Positions 38,762 to 45,682 are shown, counted from the stretch's first letter. The stretch is DNA of 64,000 bases from Epithemia pelagica (GCA_946965045.2 OX337231.1:372001-436000); one strand, 5' to 3'. Numbers and translations are program-made. The notes: generated from the letters alone by a model not told the origin.

Positions 38762-41707
38762 CTATAATCCGGCTTCGGCCCGAACGGCCGCGATTGCCGA
38801 AAGGATATCCTCATCCGTTGAACTGGACGGTGCTCGGGCCTTTAATGCATCCGAAAGTGATTTAGCCTTAGCCCGTCCGGTCACATCCTTGAGGAGCGCC
38901 ACCGCATGGATGGACTTATAAGTGTGGAGAGGGCACTTGGCGGTGGCATGGCCAAGACGGTGTTTGCAATGTCCGCATCGCGTATTACTGGAGGGCGAGG
39001 AATTGGTTCCTCCGCTGGCTGATGCTCGTCCGACTCCAAGTCCATCTCCGAGAAGAGTGTTATGCGTTTCAACGCGTTTCCACATGACACGATAAAAGGA
39101 ATTATCGTGCCATTTCTTCTTATATCCGTCTCGTAGAACAATGTAAACCTCTATAACCAGGTCACGGTAGTTCTCAGAACGTTTGCGCGTATCCGCCAAC
39201 TTTGTTCCCCAATATTTGACCATAGTTTGTGCAAAGGACCCCTCCCATTTGCCGTCCGCATAAAGCCGACTGGCCTGGATAATCTCCTCGAGGAGAGATT
39301 TATAATGGGAGATGCTCCGCAGGATCAGACGTGGGGCCCCACCGGAGTCAACGTTTTGTCCAATAGTCTCTGGGCCGTAGCCCCGGATCATCATGAAAGA
39401 CTTTAACTGTTTAGTCTGAGTCTTCCAGTCGTCCTCCGCGGCCTTGCTCACTCTCTCAGTCAAGTTCTCCAGATCCTCGATAGACTTGACGCTTAGTAAC
39501 GGCGTGTTCCTGGCGGCCTTATATAGTAGAGCTCGACCGGTTCTCGCTCCCCCAGTGCTCACTTGAGATAGAGCGATGGCCGTTATCTCCATCGTTTTCT
39601 GGAGATCGTCCCTTCGATTGCCGTCCCAGCCCTGATCTGTGCTACTGCCGGGTAAAGCCGCCACATCCATGCAACGCTCGTACAAACTAAGTGTGTCCTT
39701 ACCTTGTGCTAACCCATCCGGCACGAGTGGTGCCCTGTCGATTGCTCCCTGATCGATCACGCTGAGACCAAAAATCCTTGTGTCGTCGCCCGCATTGGGA
39801 TCCGTCCCAATCATAAACAATGGAGGTGGTTGTGACCGATGCACAGGCATCGTTCCACCCCCCAGTGACGGAGATCCAATTCCTGTTCCGACGGGCGGGC
39901 CTCCAAGATTACCCGCAGGAGGGCCCGTAATGGTCTGCGTATACTGGGAACTACCCCCAACGATCGGAGATGGCGTCGTCGGGGAACTGGGAGCGGGCTG
40001 GGTTGCCCACTGGATGGCTCTGTCACGTGTGGGGAGACGTTGTTTCCACTCATAGCCCTGACCGATATAACGCTCGACGGCTGCGAATCCTTGTGCCTCC
40101 GGCACACACACCCGATGCCATGGCTGGTTTCGTTGAAGACCGATATACCAGTCGGGCACAGGTACCGGTGGGGCGGCGGGGGGACCAGCATTGGTCTGTT
40201 GGATTCCTCCAATAACACCATCCACCGAGGTGGTATAATTCGTACCAGCCGTCGGGGTGAGATTTGTTGGTGTTGTTGACCTTGCCGTCCGGGCCCGGCG
40301 ACGATCCTGGTACAACTGCATCTGGGTCTGAAACCACTGCGATGCCGAGGGGTTGTACCCCAGAAAATGGCGTCGTATACTCCAGCCCCCCTCATCGAGA
40401 AGACGTCGAACGTTGTCTGCTTGAGTTTCTAACCGCGGATAATCCTCCTGGTTCACCAACCCTAGGACCAAGTTCTGTCCACGTTGGGCCAGACGAGGAT
40501 CTTCCTCACCCGCGGCGGTGGCTTCCTCCACTCGTACGGTAACGCCTTCCTGGTGGATTCGCATCTGGATACGATACCACGCCATGGCTGCATCCCAATC
40601 CTCACCGAAATATTCCTGGATAGTCCACCCTCCTTCCTCGGCTAAAAGCCGTTGGAGATCCTCCTGATTATCCTCTAGACGAGGAAAATTATCCTGATTA
40701 GTCAGCCCCACAATGGAGGTAGCCGCGTCTTGCAACTCGGGCCGTCCCAACGGAGGATTTCTTGGGGGAGGATTACCCGTCGGTCCACGTCGGCTATTAC
40801 GTCCTGTATCTTCAGTATTTCTCACAGGGTTGTGGCTCTCATTACGCCGGGTATACTCGTTGCGACCATCTGTCGTGGTGGTTCGCATTCCTTGGGCATT
40901 TTGCGTTGGTTCCTGACCTTGTCCTTGGGTTGTAGCCGTGGGTCGTGCATGAGGCTCGTTTCCCGCTCCCAAGTACGTCGGGTCTCTAGCCTCTACTTCT
41001 TGGTCCAGGCCATCGTGGTCAAGTCGCCGTTCCGCAGCGAAACCTTCACCAGCCGCTTCCAGATCCATCTGTTCCGCCAGGCGTAGCTCACCGTATTCAT
41101 CTTGTGAATAGGAACGCAGATCCTTTCGGCCGTGAACTATACCGCCTCTGGTGGGCACCCCCATATAATAAGCAGAAGTACCTCTCGCCTGGACATTGGC
41201 TTGTTTCTGGCGGTGTCCTCGAAGATTACACTGGGTAGCCCAGTGTCCACAGTAAGCCATGACTCGGCCACGTTCTTGTCCTGGAAGCTTGCAGGTCATA
41301 GTGACTCTACAACGGTCGTTGCTCAGCCACACCAAAGTGCGTGTAGGAGGAGCCTCGTCCACCGGTATACTGCCTTGAGAACTTTGGTCCCCCTCCTGAG
41401 ATGCTTCATCATCCAAAGGGCCCCGATCAGTACGCTGTTGCCCTTCTTCTTCGTCGTCGTCGGCGGTGTAGTATCCTACCCCGGGACGTTGCTCTCGTTC
41501 TTCGCGTCGCAACTCCGTCTCTCGGTTTGCTTCGGTCGGGCCAAATTGGACCCGCTGTCGCGTTCCTCCTCCAGCCTTGTTTCCCTGTCCACCAGGGGTA
41601 CGATGCGGAGTTCGCATTTCTTCAACTGTCGTGCCCAGGGATTCACCCCCTGGGCTTTGACACTCGCTGGTCAAACCGGAAGATAAAGGACCGGAGTACA
41701 TCGTCAT
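38762..41707 (-). CDS. Gag-like ORF (981 aa)
   Basis: First ORF of the element; N-terminal C..C...CGH...C...H motif, three internal related modules, C-terminal CGHCKHRLGHATAKC knuckle. Confidence 0.8.
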   Translation of the reverse strand: MTMYSGPLSSGLTSECQSPGGESLGTTVEEMRTPHRTPGGQGNKAGGGTRQRVQFGPTEANRETELRREEREQRPGVGYYTADDDEEEGQQRTDRGPLDDEASQEGDQSSQGSIPVDEAPPTRTLVWLSNDRCRVTMTCKLPGQERGRVMAYCGHWATQCNLRGHRQKQANVQARGTSAYYMGVPTRGGIVHGRKDLRSYSQDEYGELRLAEQMDLEAAGEGFAAERRLDHDGLDQEVEARDPTYLGAGNEPHARPTATTQGQGQEPTQNAQGMRTTTTDGRNEYTRRNESHNPVRNTEDTGRNSRRGPTGNPPPRNPPLGRPELQDAATSIVGLTNQDNFPRLEDNQEDLQRLLAEEGGWTIQEYFGEDWDAAMAWYRIQMRIHQEGVTVRVEEATAAGEEDPRLAQRGQNLVLGLVNQEDYPRLETQADNVRRLLDEGGWSIRRHFLGYNPSASQWFQTQMQLYQDRRRARTARSTTPTNLTPTAGTNYTTSVDGVIGGIQQTNAGPPAAPPVPVPDWYIGLQRNQPWHRVCVPEAQGFAAVERYIGQGYEWKQRLPTRDRAIQWATQPAPSSPTTPSPIVGGSSQYTQTITGPPAGNLGGPPVGTGIGSPSLGGGTMPVHRSQPPPLFMIGTDPNAGDDTRIFGLSVIDQGAIDRAPLVPDGLAQGKDTLSLYERCMDVAALPGSSTDQGWDGNRRDDLQKTMEITAIALSQVSTGGARTGRALLYKAARNTPLLSVKSIEDLENLTERVSKAAEDDWKTQTKQLKSFMMIRGYGPETIGQNVDSGGAPRLILRSISHYKSLLEEIIQASRLYADGKWEGSFAQTMVKYWGTKLADTRKRSENYRDLVIEVYIVLRDGYKKKWHDNSFYRVMWKRVETHNTLLGDGLGVGRASASGGTNSSPSSNTRCGHCKHRLGHATAKCPLHTYKSIHAVALLKDVTGRAKAKSLSDALKARAPSSSTDEDILSAIAAVRAEAGL

Positions 41708-42094
41708 ACGATCAACACCCCCCCAACTGAATCCAAAAGAAAAGAAAAGGAATCGTAAGGTGTTGTCGTTGTTGCTCCGTCTTCGTGAGCCACGATTGTC
41801 CTAGAGAACAATCTCTGCAGCTTTATGAGCGTACAGTGTTCGCTTCCTTGATGATCCCTCATCCGCGACCTGACTCGACTAAACCTTCCAATTTGGGGAA
41901 GCGGGCAGATGTCGTTTGATGTTGTTTGATGTCGTTTGATGTCGTTTCGGGCTCGCGCGCAAACATGGTTTGCCTCAAAATCCAGCGGTTTTCATTCAGT
42001 TGATGGGTCAACCGTCAATGATTGACTCGTAACGTTGTGATTTCTCTTAAAGAAATTCAACTGCTGGAGAGTACATATTCTTTTGGCGATAAAA

Positions 42095-42187
42095 ACATCC
42101 GACATCCTCCGACATCCTCCGACATCCTCCAACATCCTCCGACATCCTCCGACATCATCCGACATCCTCCGACATCCTCCGACATCC
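42095..42187. repeat. 10-bp tandem repeat (GACATCCTCC) x8 plus partial units
   Basis: Read directly; two variant units (aacatcctcc, gacatcatcc). Confidence 0.95.
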
Positions 42188-42397
42188 GTGACTCTGGATG
42201 TTTTCCTCATATTGAAATAATCTGTAGCTACCGTAATTTGCGGATTCCTGTCCCCCCTATAGTCCTGTCCCCCCCCCCCCCCCCACCCAGTGATGTACAT
42301 GGATCTCTAACTTTACCAGGAAGTAAGCTACGTTAGGTTTGAATACACTACGTGATTCGTGACATTACGAGCTTTCCATCGGTGTATCACACGTAAC

Positions 42398-42865
42398 ATG
42401 GGGTTTTCTCTGACGGGAGATACCATCAATATTGTGGGCATTGAGGCCTCATCAAATGGCCGATGTTGTGAAGAAAATCCTATTTGTGGTATTGTTCTTC
42501 AACACAACTCCCTTGTTCGAATCAGACTTGTCCAAATAACCATTTGTGGAAAAGAAGAGTCGGCGCTGGCTGTATTCTGGGTGACAGATGGGGTGGATCG
42601 CTGCAGAGTTGGGTTTCTTCCAAGATACTACAAGAAGAATGCCCATCTCTATGATGGAAAGCTGGCTCAAGTCACCGAGTTTTTAAAGGATTCAGAGTTC
42701 CCTTCAGAGAGGGAAAAGAGTTACAGAGGACGTGGTGTTTGTCGTGCTGCTTTAGTGGAAGTTGTGGAGACTCCACCAAGAAAACGTTCACTCAGTTCCG
42801 TATCAAAGGATGATGATGAAGACCAAGACAACAAAAAGAAAAAAAGCATCAGTTCTATAGCCTAA
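42398..42865 (+). CDS. HIRAN-like passenger protein inside the pogo element
   Basis: 155-aa ORF from ATG 42398: INIVGIEASSNGRCCEENPICG...SALAVFWVTDGVDRCRVGFLP...YDGKLAQVTE. The A-x-V...VGFLP pattern resembles HIRAN; basic C-terminal NLS-like stretch. Confidence 0.6.
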   Translation: MGFSLTGDTINIVGIEASSNGRCCEENPICGIVLQHNSLVRIRLVQITICGKEESALAVFWVTDGVDRCRVGFLPRYYKKNAHLYDGKLAQVTEFLKDSEFPSEREKSYRGRGVCRAALVEVVETPPRKRSLSSVSKDDDEDQDNKKKKSISSIA

Positions 42866-44194
42866 TTAATCAATAGAAATACTGTCACTTGACAAACTGA
42901 GTTCTTGCATACTATCTTCCAATTCTTGGATTGTTTCTGTCGGTGTAGATGGAGCAACCTCCCCAGGAAAAAATGAGTATTCTCCATGTCGCCAGGCATG
43001 CCTAATGATATCCCCATCCAATTCCTTTAAAGCCATGTCACACCACTTGGCAATGGTAGGACGACTTGGAGGAGTTGTCTTATCCTGTGCAAGTCCCTCC
43101 TCCAACATGTATTGCTCCCAGGCCGCTCTAATCCGATTTTTGAGCGGCTTGTTGATACCAACATCAACTGGTTGGCAAAGGGAAGTACATCCACCAGGGA
43201 TGTACTCCACTTCAACTCCGAGTTCCTCAATGGCAGTATTCACAGATGACATCAAATGACACTTGTAAGAGTCAAGGAACAACAAGGGGGTAATTCCTTC
43301 TGGGGCTTTCTGCGCCCATGGTTTCACCACCTTCTCTGCCCACTCAAGACAAATACGCTCATCCATCCATGCTTTTGGCTGTGCTGCGTAAAAGCAGTCC
43401 TTGGGATAGTCGTTCTTATCATCTGTAAACTCTCTGTTGATTCTTCCATTGGCTTTACCTTTATAAACCATGTAGGGGGGGAGCATCTCTCCATTTGCAG
43501 TCACAAACACAGCCAGCGTCACCCTCATTGTACTCCCACTGGACGCCCTTACATGTACACTTCTCGACCCCTGTGTTTCAAGTGTAGTGTTAGGAGTCAT
43601 TGAGAAAAACACAGGGGTCTGGTCCATATTCGCAATGAAGTCTTTATGACGACATGGCTGTTGAATCAATGGAAGGACAGACTGGACAAACTGCTTGGCT
43701 TCTTCTTGTTTTTCTCTGGGATGGGTTTGCGCCTCGTGGGTCTTTGATCTGATCACAATACCCTTGGCACGGAGAATGCGTCTGATTATTGCATACTTAG
43801 CTGTAGAGCTCTTGCGACGCAAGTTGTTGTCCATCTGGCATGCCATTATGACAGCCATGTTGGTGGACACTGGCATTCCAGACTCTCTCAACTCCATGAT
43901 CTTGTCCACCAGGTCATCTGCCTTCGGAAAGGTTGTCTTCCGGCCAAAGTGGACAGAGAACTTCGACTTCTTGGAATCGTGGCAAGCCTGTAGGAGCGTT
44001 GGCATTTGCTTCATCCATCGTCTCAACTGAGAGGGATCCACATCTTCATCTCTTGCCAGCTTTTTTAAAGAAAAGTTGGCATCCAATCTACGACCTCTCC
44101 TCAGTTTGTTGCAGATCTCCACCTTCCTTTTGTTGGGAATGAAAACCCGACATCGCTTTGGGACGTTGATGTGGTCTTCATCCGCAGCGTCCAT
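42866..44194 (-). CDS. pogo-family DD35D transposase
   Basis: HTH/CENP-B-like N-terminus; NMDQTP, FLDSYKCH, 35 residues, QPVDVGINKPLK. Intact ORF from ATG 44194. Confidence 0.95.
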   Translation of the reverse strand: MDAADEDHINVPKRCRVFIPNKRKVEICNKLRRGRRLDANFSLKKLARDEDVDPSQLRRWMKQMPTLLQACHDSKKSKFSVHFGRKTTFPKADDLVDKIMELRESGMPVSTNMAVIMACQMDNNLRRKSSTAKYAIIRRILRAKGIVIRSKTHEAQTHPREKQEEAKQFVQSVLPLIQQPCRHKDFIANMDQTPVFFSMTPNTTLETQGSRSVHVRASSGSTMRVTLAVFVTANGEMLPPYMVYKGKANGRINREFTDDKNDYPKDCFYAAQPKAWMDERICLEWAEKVVKPWAQKAPEGITPLLFLDSYKCHLMSSVNTAIEELGVEVEYIPGGCTSLCQPVDVGINKPLKNRIRAAWEQYMLEEGLAQDKTTPPSRPTIAKWCDMALKELDGDIIRHAWRHGEYSFFPGEVAPSTPTETIQELEDSMQELSLSSDSISID

Positions 44195-44557
44195 GGTCAA
44201 AAGCTCTTACACGCAGTGATGAGCGGACCTCCCACCACCGAATCAAAAAAAGCGCGAAAAAACACTGTCTTGTAAATAGTACTACGATATGGAATCTTAT
44301 GGAATCTTAAAAAAAATTTACGAAAAATTTACGTAGTCCTGTCCCCCCCCCTCAGATTTTTTGAACATTCCGGGGGGACAGGAATCCGCAAATTACGGTA
44401 GTATGATCATATCAGAGGTATTACTGTGTGATACTGAAGAAAGGAAACATCGTGACGATACTCTGAGTAGTAGAAGGATTACCTACGTTTTGATTTTGAG
44501 TCCATTACCGGAAGTTGCTGTAAAAATAAAAAAAAGCGTAAAGTGAATCAACTGTGT

Positions 44558-45682
44558 ATGACCATGACACTACAAGAACAAGCAAGTCAGTCGGGCCTTG
44601 TCCTTTTGAACAACTCAGCAGAATGGAATGAAAACGACTGGCCTCCCCTCAAGGGAGGATCGCGTTACGATCATGCTTCGGTCGTACTCGATCATACGGT
44701 CGTCGTGTTGGGTGGATATCAACAAGGTCAAGGCGTTCTCAACTCCGTTTTTCTCCTAAATTTAGCAGAACCAAGCAAGCAGTGGCGAGAAGGACCACCC
44801 TTGATCAAGAAACGTGACGAACATTCCGCTGTTGTGTGCAACGGAGGCATCTACGTTATGGGAGGACGCAATCTGTTGAATTGTATCGAACGGATTGACG
44901 TTCATGATTTGCTGCAATCATCTTTAACAACCAGCACCAAGCATGCGAGCAGTTGGAAGACATTGAATTGTCGGTTATCAACAGAACGAAGACGATGTTG
45001 TGCTGTTGCGGTGGAAAATCGATATATTGTGGTAATGGGTGGACGCAAGAGCAAGAGGGGGCAAGACTTATCGTCAGTGGATATTATGGATACCCGCAAC
45101 CACACTGTCAATGCGGGACCATGCATGAAGGTTCCTCGGTGTGACTGTGCCGGTACGGTCATTGGTCACCGCATCTTTGTCGTTGGTGGTGGTAACATTG
45201 ATGACGGACTACTTGACTCGGTGGAGTATTTGGAATTCGCATCGGCTTGTGACAATCAGGAGACAAAGGCAGAGACAGTTGCTAAAGTCATTTCCTCCTG
45301 GTCCACTTGGACCACTCATTCTTATTTGAGGCTTTCGGACCCAGGACGTGTTTGTGCAGTGGGTGTGGGATCCTGTCTGGTGGTGGCGGGAGGACGATAC
45401 GACGGAACCGTGGAAATCTTGGATACGAACCGAAACTGCGTGTGGAATCTTCCACCATTCAGAAATGACCGTGAAGGCTGTAGTATGGTCACTGTTGCCA
45501 ATCAAGTTGCCGTGATTGGTGGATGGGGCAATTCTTCCTGTGCGACATTACCACTCATGGACAAGAATTCGTGGTGTTTTCGTCGACTCTGCGAGCCTCA
45601 GCCCAATGGATGGTATCATTCTCTGGAAGGAATGGGTAACCGAGATACTGATATTTCATCCTTCTCCACCGCGGCAACATGA
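44558..45682 (+). CDS. Kelch-repeat protein (copy 1)
   Basis: Repeated VVLGG, IYVMGG, IVVMGG, IFVVGG, VVAGG and AVIGG kelch blades. Confidence 0.92.
   Translation: MTMTLQEQASQSGLVLLNNSAEWNENDWPPLKGGSRYDHASVVLDHTVVVLGGYQQGQGVLNSVFLLNLAEPSKQWREGPPLIKKRDEHSAVVCNGGIYVMGGRNLLNCIERIDVHDLLQSSLTTSTKHASSWKTLNCRLSTERRRCCAVAVENRYIVVMGGRKSKRGQDLSSVDIMDTRNHTVNAGPCMKVPRCDCAGTVIGHRIFVVGGGNIDDGLLDSVEYLEFASACDNQETKAETVAKVISSWSTWTTHSYLRLSDPGRVCAVGVGSCLVVAGGRYDGTVEILDTNRNCVWNLPPFRNDREGCSMVTVANQVAVIGGWGNSSCATLPLMDKNSWCFRRLCEPQPNGWYHSLEGMGNRDTDISSFSTAAT

Follow-up and report, generated by a model that had tools for sequence, protein, structure and literature searches.

The genome of the diatom Epithemia pelagica harbors a pogo-superfamily cut-and-paste transposon which carries, next to its DDE_1 transposase, a second, small gene. 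This gene is a component of the element, experiences purifying selection and has been passed on along with the transposase ever since the family began to diversify. The element was found in a window of 64,000 nucleotides (GCA_946965045.2 OX337231.1:372001-436000, one strand, 5’ to 3’), and all positions given below are counted from the first letter of this window. We read it as an autonomous and recently active transposon that operates as an obligate two-gene unit, in which the small protein would serve as a transposition cofactor binding DNA ends or DNA structures. We put the probability of this reading at roughly 60%.

The features of the element are listed in Table 1. A repeat finder returned one outstanding inverted pair in the region 41800–44900, with arms of 30 nt each (42228–42257 and 44372–44401) that are 100% complementary. 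Read against the sequence, these arms resolve into a 27-bp terminal inverted repeat (TIR), the TA and one extra base that is complementary by chance. The two convergent open reading frames (ORFs) lie between the TIRs and their stop codons touch, leaving a gap of zero. A preliminary description of this stretch had reported perfect 27-bp TIRs, a TA duplication and two ORFs with abutting stops, and the repeat finder, the ORF list and the sequence itself bear this out. The minus-strand ORF extends further to a TTG at 44200; this listed start is irrelevant for a eukaryote, and from the first ATG the transposase comprises 442 aa. For the small ORF a GTG start at 42359 was discarded, as the homologues start at ATG. 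The first bases of the TIR, CCGTA followed by A or T and then TTT, are common to six divergent relatives of the element. On both sides the inner half of the TIR is repeated in subterminal position, similar to the subterminal TIR repeats of Lemi1/Emigrant (PMC1636448). The motif of the left subterminal repeat is found again in a MITE (L009), and the repeat is probably a second binding site for the transposase. The right subterminal copy could form a hairpin with the right TIR, with a spacer of 23 nt (44326–44348 and 44372–44394, 87%).

Table 1. Anatomy of the two-gene pogo element; positions refer to the 64,000-nucleotide window.
Feature	Position	Strand	Remarks
TA target-site duplication, left	42229–42230		TA precedes the TIR in 36/36 perfect genomic copies of the pattern
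Left TIR, 27 bp	42231–42257	+	100% complementary to the right arm
Left subterminal repeat of the TIR inner half, running into a poly-C tract	42261–42284	+	direct copy; read from the sequence
Accessory gene, 155 aa	42398–42865	+	ATG start; stop TAA 42863–42865
Pogo transposase, 442 aa from the first ATG (44194)	42866–44194	-	stop read as TTA 42866–42868
Right subterminal copy of the TIR inner half	44335–44351	+	inverted relative to the right TIR
Right TIR, 27 bp	44372–44398	-	100% complementary to the left arm
TA target-site duplication, right	44399–44400		read from the sequence

The transposase matches the Pfam domain DDE_1 (PF03184) over residues 226–403 with an E-value of 4.9e-24 and a score of 85.3 bits (cut-off 22). 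When the window transposase was aligned with 47 homologues, the catalytic residues D191, D308 and D344 were found to be invariant in all 48 sequences, which corresponds to a DD35D triad with 35 residues between the last two positions. The N-terminal helix-turn-helix signal is weak, with values for HTH_Tnp_1 (0.0018) and CENP-B_N (0.018) that both stay below the curated Pfam cut-offs; PF01527, PF03221 or PF04218 are present in some of the transposase homologues. A word search yielded 275 homologues at E ≤1e-10, and the few named ones among them are annotated as ‘pogo transposable element’ of the diatom Fragilaria crotonensis (~45% identity). The DDE_1 domain, the DDD triad with the spacing typical for the family, the TIRs and the flanking TA place the element in the pogo superfamily, as had been proposed from the window, and it also shares with this superfamily a length of ~2.2 kb and the presence of MITE derivatives. 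In its spacing of 35 residues the triad resembles that of Passer and Fot/Fot-like elements. The element departs from the superfamily in its coding capacity, which is not restricted to the transposase, as all lineages that were examined have a conserved second gene. This makes it a variant of the known pogo type and not a new kind of transposon.

Within the genome (60.5 Mb, 23 contigs) we found three full copies with 98–100% identity, a further copy that is internally deleted and, in addition, more distant relatives of the element. Dozens of short genomic elements share the ends of the element alone. The word consisting of TA and TIR is present at 68 sites in the 60.5-Mb genome when up to 2 mismatches are allowed, compared to 0 sites for the reversed control, and the pattern is thus not due to chance. 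Most of these sites pair at a distance of ~433 bp and a few at ~810–830 bp, and one MITE of ~433 bp was read directly in the sequence. Overall there are about 30 MITE derivatives that carry the ends of the element; because they are non-coding, they need to be mobilized in trans. The near-identical copies together with the many short derivatives indicate that this pogo element moved recently in the diatom genome.

Regarding the small gene, a protein-level search revealed a stop-free ORF at 10 genomic places with 42–100% identity, and at all 10 of them a pogo transposase, either intact or decayed, is located tail-to-tail with it. The distance between the two stop codons differs between lineages (0, -6, +7, +32 or +109 nt); since it does not exceed 109 nt in any of them, an overlap of the convergent transcripts is a reasonable assumption, and such transcripts might form dsRNA, as put forward in the preliminary description. 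All six divergent relatives that were checked measure ~2.2 kb and are bordered by TA-flanked inverted repeats. The same arrangement is found in other organisms. Both genes are present at nine of nine foreign loci with space for both, one of them from F. crotonensis. When we started from homologues of the small protein, a convergent DDE_1 gene was found at four of four foreign loci with space for a neighbor, and in the opposite direction, each of three transposase homologues that we tried, with five loci in total, had a convergent member of the small-protein family just downstream, with E-values from 1e-48 to 1e-53. One of these five loci stems from the NCBI assembly of F. crotonensis. The two-gene system postulated from a single stretch of DNA thereby recurs across lineages and organisms, and the gene pair was present in every lineage examined, in this genome and elsewhere, down to a transposase identity of ~33–40%.

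The small gene shows a dN/dS of ~0.12 between the window lineage and a lineage with 75% identity; for lineages that lie further apart, the synonymous sites have reached saturation. Conservation and dN/dS rule out a chance ORF. Non-synonymous divergence amounts to 0.19 in the small gene vs 0.15 in the transposase, 0.29 vs 0.29 and 0.30 vs 0.28, and over 12 paired loci the pairwise identity in one protein correlates with that in the other (r = 0.93, Mantel p = 1e-4). From the paired loci and the correlated divergence we conclude that both genes travelled together throughout the diversification of the clade. An alternative would be that this pogo copy picked up the small gene from the host in a single event and that the gene has no role for the element, in line with the description of classical pogo elements as transposase-only (PMC7386202; PMC7325037). 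A single capture is highly improbable, however, given a gene pair that extends over every lineage examined and several organisms, the correlated divergence of both proteins and the purifying selection, and a stand-alone host copy of the small-protein family was not seen among the loci with space for both genes. The term ‘passenger gene’, which the preliminary description had used, is consequently unfit for a gene that is co-inherited and co-diverging with the transposase. Copies whose transposase has broken down still have an intact small gene; this may be a mere effect of its small size, and it also fits a role that is independent of the transposase.

The family to which the small protein belongs has neither a name nor a Pfam entry. 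No Pfam match was obtained for the small protein or for 58 of its relatives, even at E ≤10. A word search gave 123 matches, and a profile search among 1.84 billion cluster representatives retrieved 1,907 of them at E ≤1e-3, with 954 remaining at E ≤1e-10; most of the family matches come from metagenome or assembly records. Members are mostly small. Longer ones (260–425 aa) differ by their low-complexity tails, and no extra Pfam domain was found in them. In the window protein, residues ~5–122 are predicted to adopt a HIRAN-like fold, which is followed by a basic PPRKR patch and a disordered tail with acidic and basic residues. The core of the family alignment spans ~118 residues with D64, G65, C69, G72, F73 and L74 being invariant. 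Among 288 members a C-x2-H-x2-C...C pattern is highly conserved (C24 97%, H27 94%, C30 98%, C69 99%), and these four residues probably form a structural zinc site. The window copy carries Asn at position 27, where His is present in all three of its sister copies and in 94% of the 288 members. Because Asn27 replaces the His of the sister copies, the small protein of the window copy may be weakened. The reading frame of the small ORF is intact in spite of Asn27. The preliminary description had spoken of two intact ORFs, which is accurate for both reading frames, but has to be qualified for the window copy at this conserved position.

The preliminary description had further called the small protein HIRAN-like, a claim that we could follow at the level of the fold only. 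The AlphaFold2 model has a mean pLDDT of 78, with values of ~90 at residues 40–120 and only 54 at residues 21–30, where three of the four residues of the putative zinc site are located. A Foldseek search against the PDB placed HIRAN domains on top (3k2y and the HLTF structures 6kcs, 4s0n and 4xzg) with E ~0.02 and a probability of 0.99. VIA-align against 48,161 representative chains gave a Z of 8.0 for 3k2y (97 residues, 4.6 Å), 6.8 for the HIRAN domain of HLTF and 5.7 for the HIRAN region of K. lactis Rad5, with the next fold at 4.0; Z values of 6–8 lie in the range where the program warns of a merely common arrangement. After realignment of the top 1,000 Foldseek chains, the first seven PDB entries were all HIRAN (Z 8.0–5.6), with the eighth entry at 3.2. 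These top alignments cover ~90 of ~120 residues with an rmsd of 3.6–4.6 Å and 14–16% identity. In the ESM Atlas the protein retrieved its own diatom cluster and then a giant-virus HIRAN cluster (TM 0.48/0.63, the value of 0.63 by target), and HIRAN proteins were listed among the weak matches in a viral library. RPA domains rank low in the structure search (Z 2.3–2.4). A feature-based Atlas search gave RPA-like leads alone, whose scores of 0.75–0.77 are at noise level and below those reached by shuffled proteins.

At the sequence level no relation to HIRAN was detected. A profile search with the small protein returned no match among PDB sequences, and a six-frame search of this genome with PF08797 returned nothing at E ≤1. 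Using hhalign, the comparisons with phage AXL1 gp56 and with an alignment of 18 phage HIRAN proteins were not significant (E 0.09 and 0.04, probability ~1%), the latter alignment being shallow (58–92% identity) and therefore a weak test. The non-significant match to the single phage protein pairs the invariant VGFLPR of the family with LGYIPR of this HIRAN protein in the same strand order. With the three-dimensional fold agreeing on the predicted model and the match to the family profile failing, the small protein is outside PF08797 as this family is defined. What it has in common with the HIRAN domains of HLTF, Rad5, phage and giant-virus proteins is the overall fold of the predicted model and the size of ~100–120 residues. 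Like gp56 of phage AXL1 (PMC9206674) and the giant-virus HIRAN proteins of the Atlas cluster, it is moreover small, stands alone and is encoded by a mobile genetic element. In contrast to canonical HIRAN, where such a motif is absent, the C-x2-H-x2-C...C pattern replaces the loop after the first strand, and the invariant signature W-V-T-D-G-x-D-x-C-x-V-G-F-L-P is unlike the HIRAN signature.

It could be argued that the protein resembles HIRAN by coincidence, small beta-barrels being common, and that it represents a novel zinc-binding fold whose function has nothing to do with DNA ends. The Z values of at most 8, the large rmsd with low identity, the negative outcome of all sequence and profile tests, a conserved C-H-C-C motif alien to canonical HIRAN and the low model confidence around this motif would be compatible with such a coincidence. 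We nevertheless regard it as quite unlikely, as HIRAN fills the first seven positions with more than 2 Z units down to the next fold, most of the domain is covered by the alignments, independent libraries returned HIRAN as well and the VGFLPR/LGYIPR pairing keeps the order of strands. We read the predicted model as a fold of the HIRAN type, which may be a very distant relative and carries a putative zinc motif in addition.

In HLTF and Rad5 the HIRAN domain binds DNA at free 3’ ends, and cleavage by Tc1/mariner/pogo transposases leaves 3’-OH ends and short 3’ overhangs. As HIRAN binds free 3’ ends and pogo-type cleavage creates such ends, end-binding is the most economical guess for the function of the small protein. 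In the mechanism that we propose, the DD35D transposase would recognize the 27-bp TIRs and the subterminal repeats and insert the element at TA. The product of the second gene would be a small nuclear-type protein consisting of one beta-barrel domain with HIRAN fold, a probable zinc motif and a charged disordered tail, and would act as a DNA-binding cofactor of transposition, most likely by reading DNA ends or structured DNA. Candidate targets are the 3’-OH ends and short 3’ overhangs that cleavage leaves on the element after excision and at its donor site; recessed 3’ ends of the target DNA are another candidate. The protein might hold or protect these ends, aid the choice of target or aid repair, and it could also serve, in trans, the ~30 MITE derivatives, which have neither of the two genes. 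This cofactor role is inferred from the predicted fold and the context of the gene, as are the binding of transposon ends, the targeting to forks and the aid in gap repair that the preliminary description had considered.

The main rival of the cofactor role holds that the small protein belongs to the element as a regulator. It might damp the transposase, counteract host silencing as the VANC proteins of plant VANDAL elements do, or escort the transposase into the nucleus as does the Myb-like protein of PIF/Harbinger. Co-inheritance and purifying selection would suit any function that is useful to the element, and the basic PPRKR patch with the charged disordered tail, the intact small gene in copies with a broken transposase and the missing sequence-level tie to HIRAN can all be accommodated in this way. 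We consider a regulatory, anti-silencing or nuclear-import role possible but doubtful, since the outstanding structural relatives are solely DNA-end-binding HIRAN domains and no pointer to any specific regulatory mechanism was found.

A more far-reaching version of the cofactor role takes up an analogy from bacteria, where TnsE of Tn7 binds recessed 3’ ends as well as the sliding clamp and in this way steers insertion to replicating DNA (reviewed in PMC5371812). A domain of the HIRAN type would be suited to reading 3’ ends in a similar manner. The small protein would then be a functional eukaryotic counterpart of TnsE that senses free or recessed 3’ ends, at replication forks or at the cleaved ends of transposon and donor, and couples cut-and-paste transposition of the Tc1/mariner type to replication or repair; it would also be a new, zinc-bearing branch of HIRAN. 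The analogy is hypothetical and functional alone, with no homology, another kingdom and another transposase, and we rate this version as rather unlikely. If true, the element would represent the first lineage of pogo/Tc1/mariner transposons in which a dedicated subunit senses ends or targets.

Several two-component DNA transposons are known in eukaryotes, among them PIF/Harbinger with a Myb-like ORF, MuDR with mudrB, VANDAL with VANB/VANC and CACTA with TNPA. To our knowledge, and within the literature searched, no accessory partner is known for Tc1/mariner/pogo elements. Similar to the element described here, the two-component transposons have an accessory protein beside the transposase that is co-inherited and able to act in trans on non-autonomous copies; they differ in that they use a transposase of another superfamily and an accessory protein with an unrelated fold. 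An assignment to PIF/Harbinger fails on both genes, as the transposase is of the DDE_1 type and the accessory protein has neither a Myb/SANT nor any other Pfam match. Plant Helitrons carry RPA-like single-strand-binding proteins, which likewise are transposon-borne DNA binders of the OB type, with a zinc motif in some of them.

For the pogo superfamily (Tigger, pogoR, Passer, Fot/Fot-like, Lemi, Mover), Gao et al. 2020 state ‘one or two ORFs encoding transposases’ (PMC7386202), and a survey of pogo and Tc1/mariner diversity describes transposase ORFs only (PMC7325037); neither of the two surveys mentions an accessory gene. The ‘two ORFs’ of Lemi1 are two pieces of one transposase (PMC1636448), whereas the element from E. 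pelagica has a constant second gene that is unrelated and convergent. A full-text whole-word literature search for HIRAN and transposon revealed no eukaryotic transposon with HIRAN. Within the literature searched, the two-gene architecture and the small protein family appear to be undescribed.

Tc1/mariner/pogo elements are the textbook example of transposons reduced to a single gene, and gene-transfer tools in wide use are based on them. That a second gene was kept while the transposases diverged to ~35% identity implies that in this large clade the machinery comprises more than the transposase. At the same time a nameless family of ~1,900 cluster representatives gains a genomic context and a predicted fold. 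If the HIRAN-like domain reads 3’ ends, the handling of transposon ends, a replication-related choice of target and the fate of the donor break would become testable. With its active-looking copies and MITEs, the element provides diatom genetics with a natural system and perhaps also with a tool.

Inside the C-x2-H-x2-C motif of the small accessory gene, codon 27 (about 42476-42478) of the window copy encodes Asn. We found His at this position in all three near-identical sister copies, on contigs 5, 6 and 7, and in 94% of 288 family members. Judging from this comparison of sequences, the accessory protein of the window copy may be impaired despite its unbroken reading frame. Among the sister copies, those on contigs 7 and 5 carry a damaged transposase gene, and the small gene is intact in both (see table).

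Coordinates of the genes flanking the transposon in the window and of the two sister copies with a damaged transposase (G000, the 60.5-Mb genome that holds the window; C, its contigs; L, individual loci)
Feature	Position	Strand	Observation
Kelch-repeat gene, right neighbour of the transposon	window 44561-45682	+	Kelch_1 at 1.1e-27
981-aa ORF left of the element	window 38762-41707	-	CxxC...H...C knuckle-like stretch near the ORF end
Contig-7 sister copy (L034 / L003)	G000:C7:946773-948949		longest transposase ORF 212 aa
Contig-5 sister copy (L032 / L004-L005)	G000:C5:3594284-3595979		~457 bp missing (query positions 948-1404)

A six-frame search of the whole 60.5-Mb genome with the Pfam HIRAN model (PF08797) gave no match at E<=1, which would be unexpected if a canonical HIRAN of the Rad5/HLTF type were present; such a domain may, though, be split by introns or be too divergent for the first look of the search.

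The right end of the transposon lies ~160 bp upstream of the first ATG of the Kelch-repeat gene, and the insertion therefore falls within the likely promoter region of this gene. On the other side, the 981-aa ORF had no match in a Pfam search at E<=0.001. Directly left of the transposon we noticed a 10-bp tandem repeat of the unit CGACATCCTC, with about nine slightly varying copies (window 42100-42187). Two further short tandem duplications, TATGGAATCT and a AAAATTTACG-like unit, each present twice, are located within the element at 44289-44335, in the stretch that separates the start of the transposase from the subterminal repeat on the right, and may represent promoter or binding-site repeats.

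Regarding other assemblies, the foreign two-gene copy L058 (JGI 3300081957, Ga0673009_0004517) is flanked by reverse-transcriptase and RNase H fragments, a position which indicates that the element was inserted into an LTR-type retroelement. A second copy, L048 (ENA assembly ERZ21939226, contig ctg1347l), shares 97% identity in both proteins with L037 (G000:C3:1705017), one of the divergent lineages of the two-gene element in the genome of the window. This similarity points either to a very close relative of the window's organism or to horizontal spread of the element.
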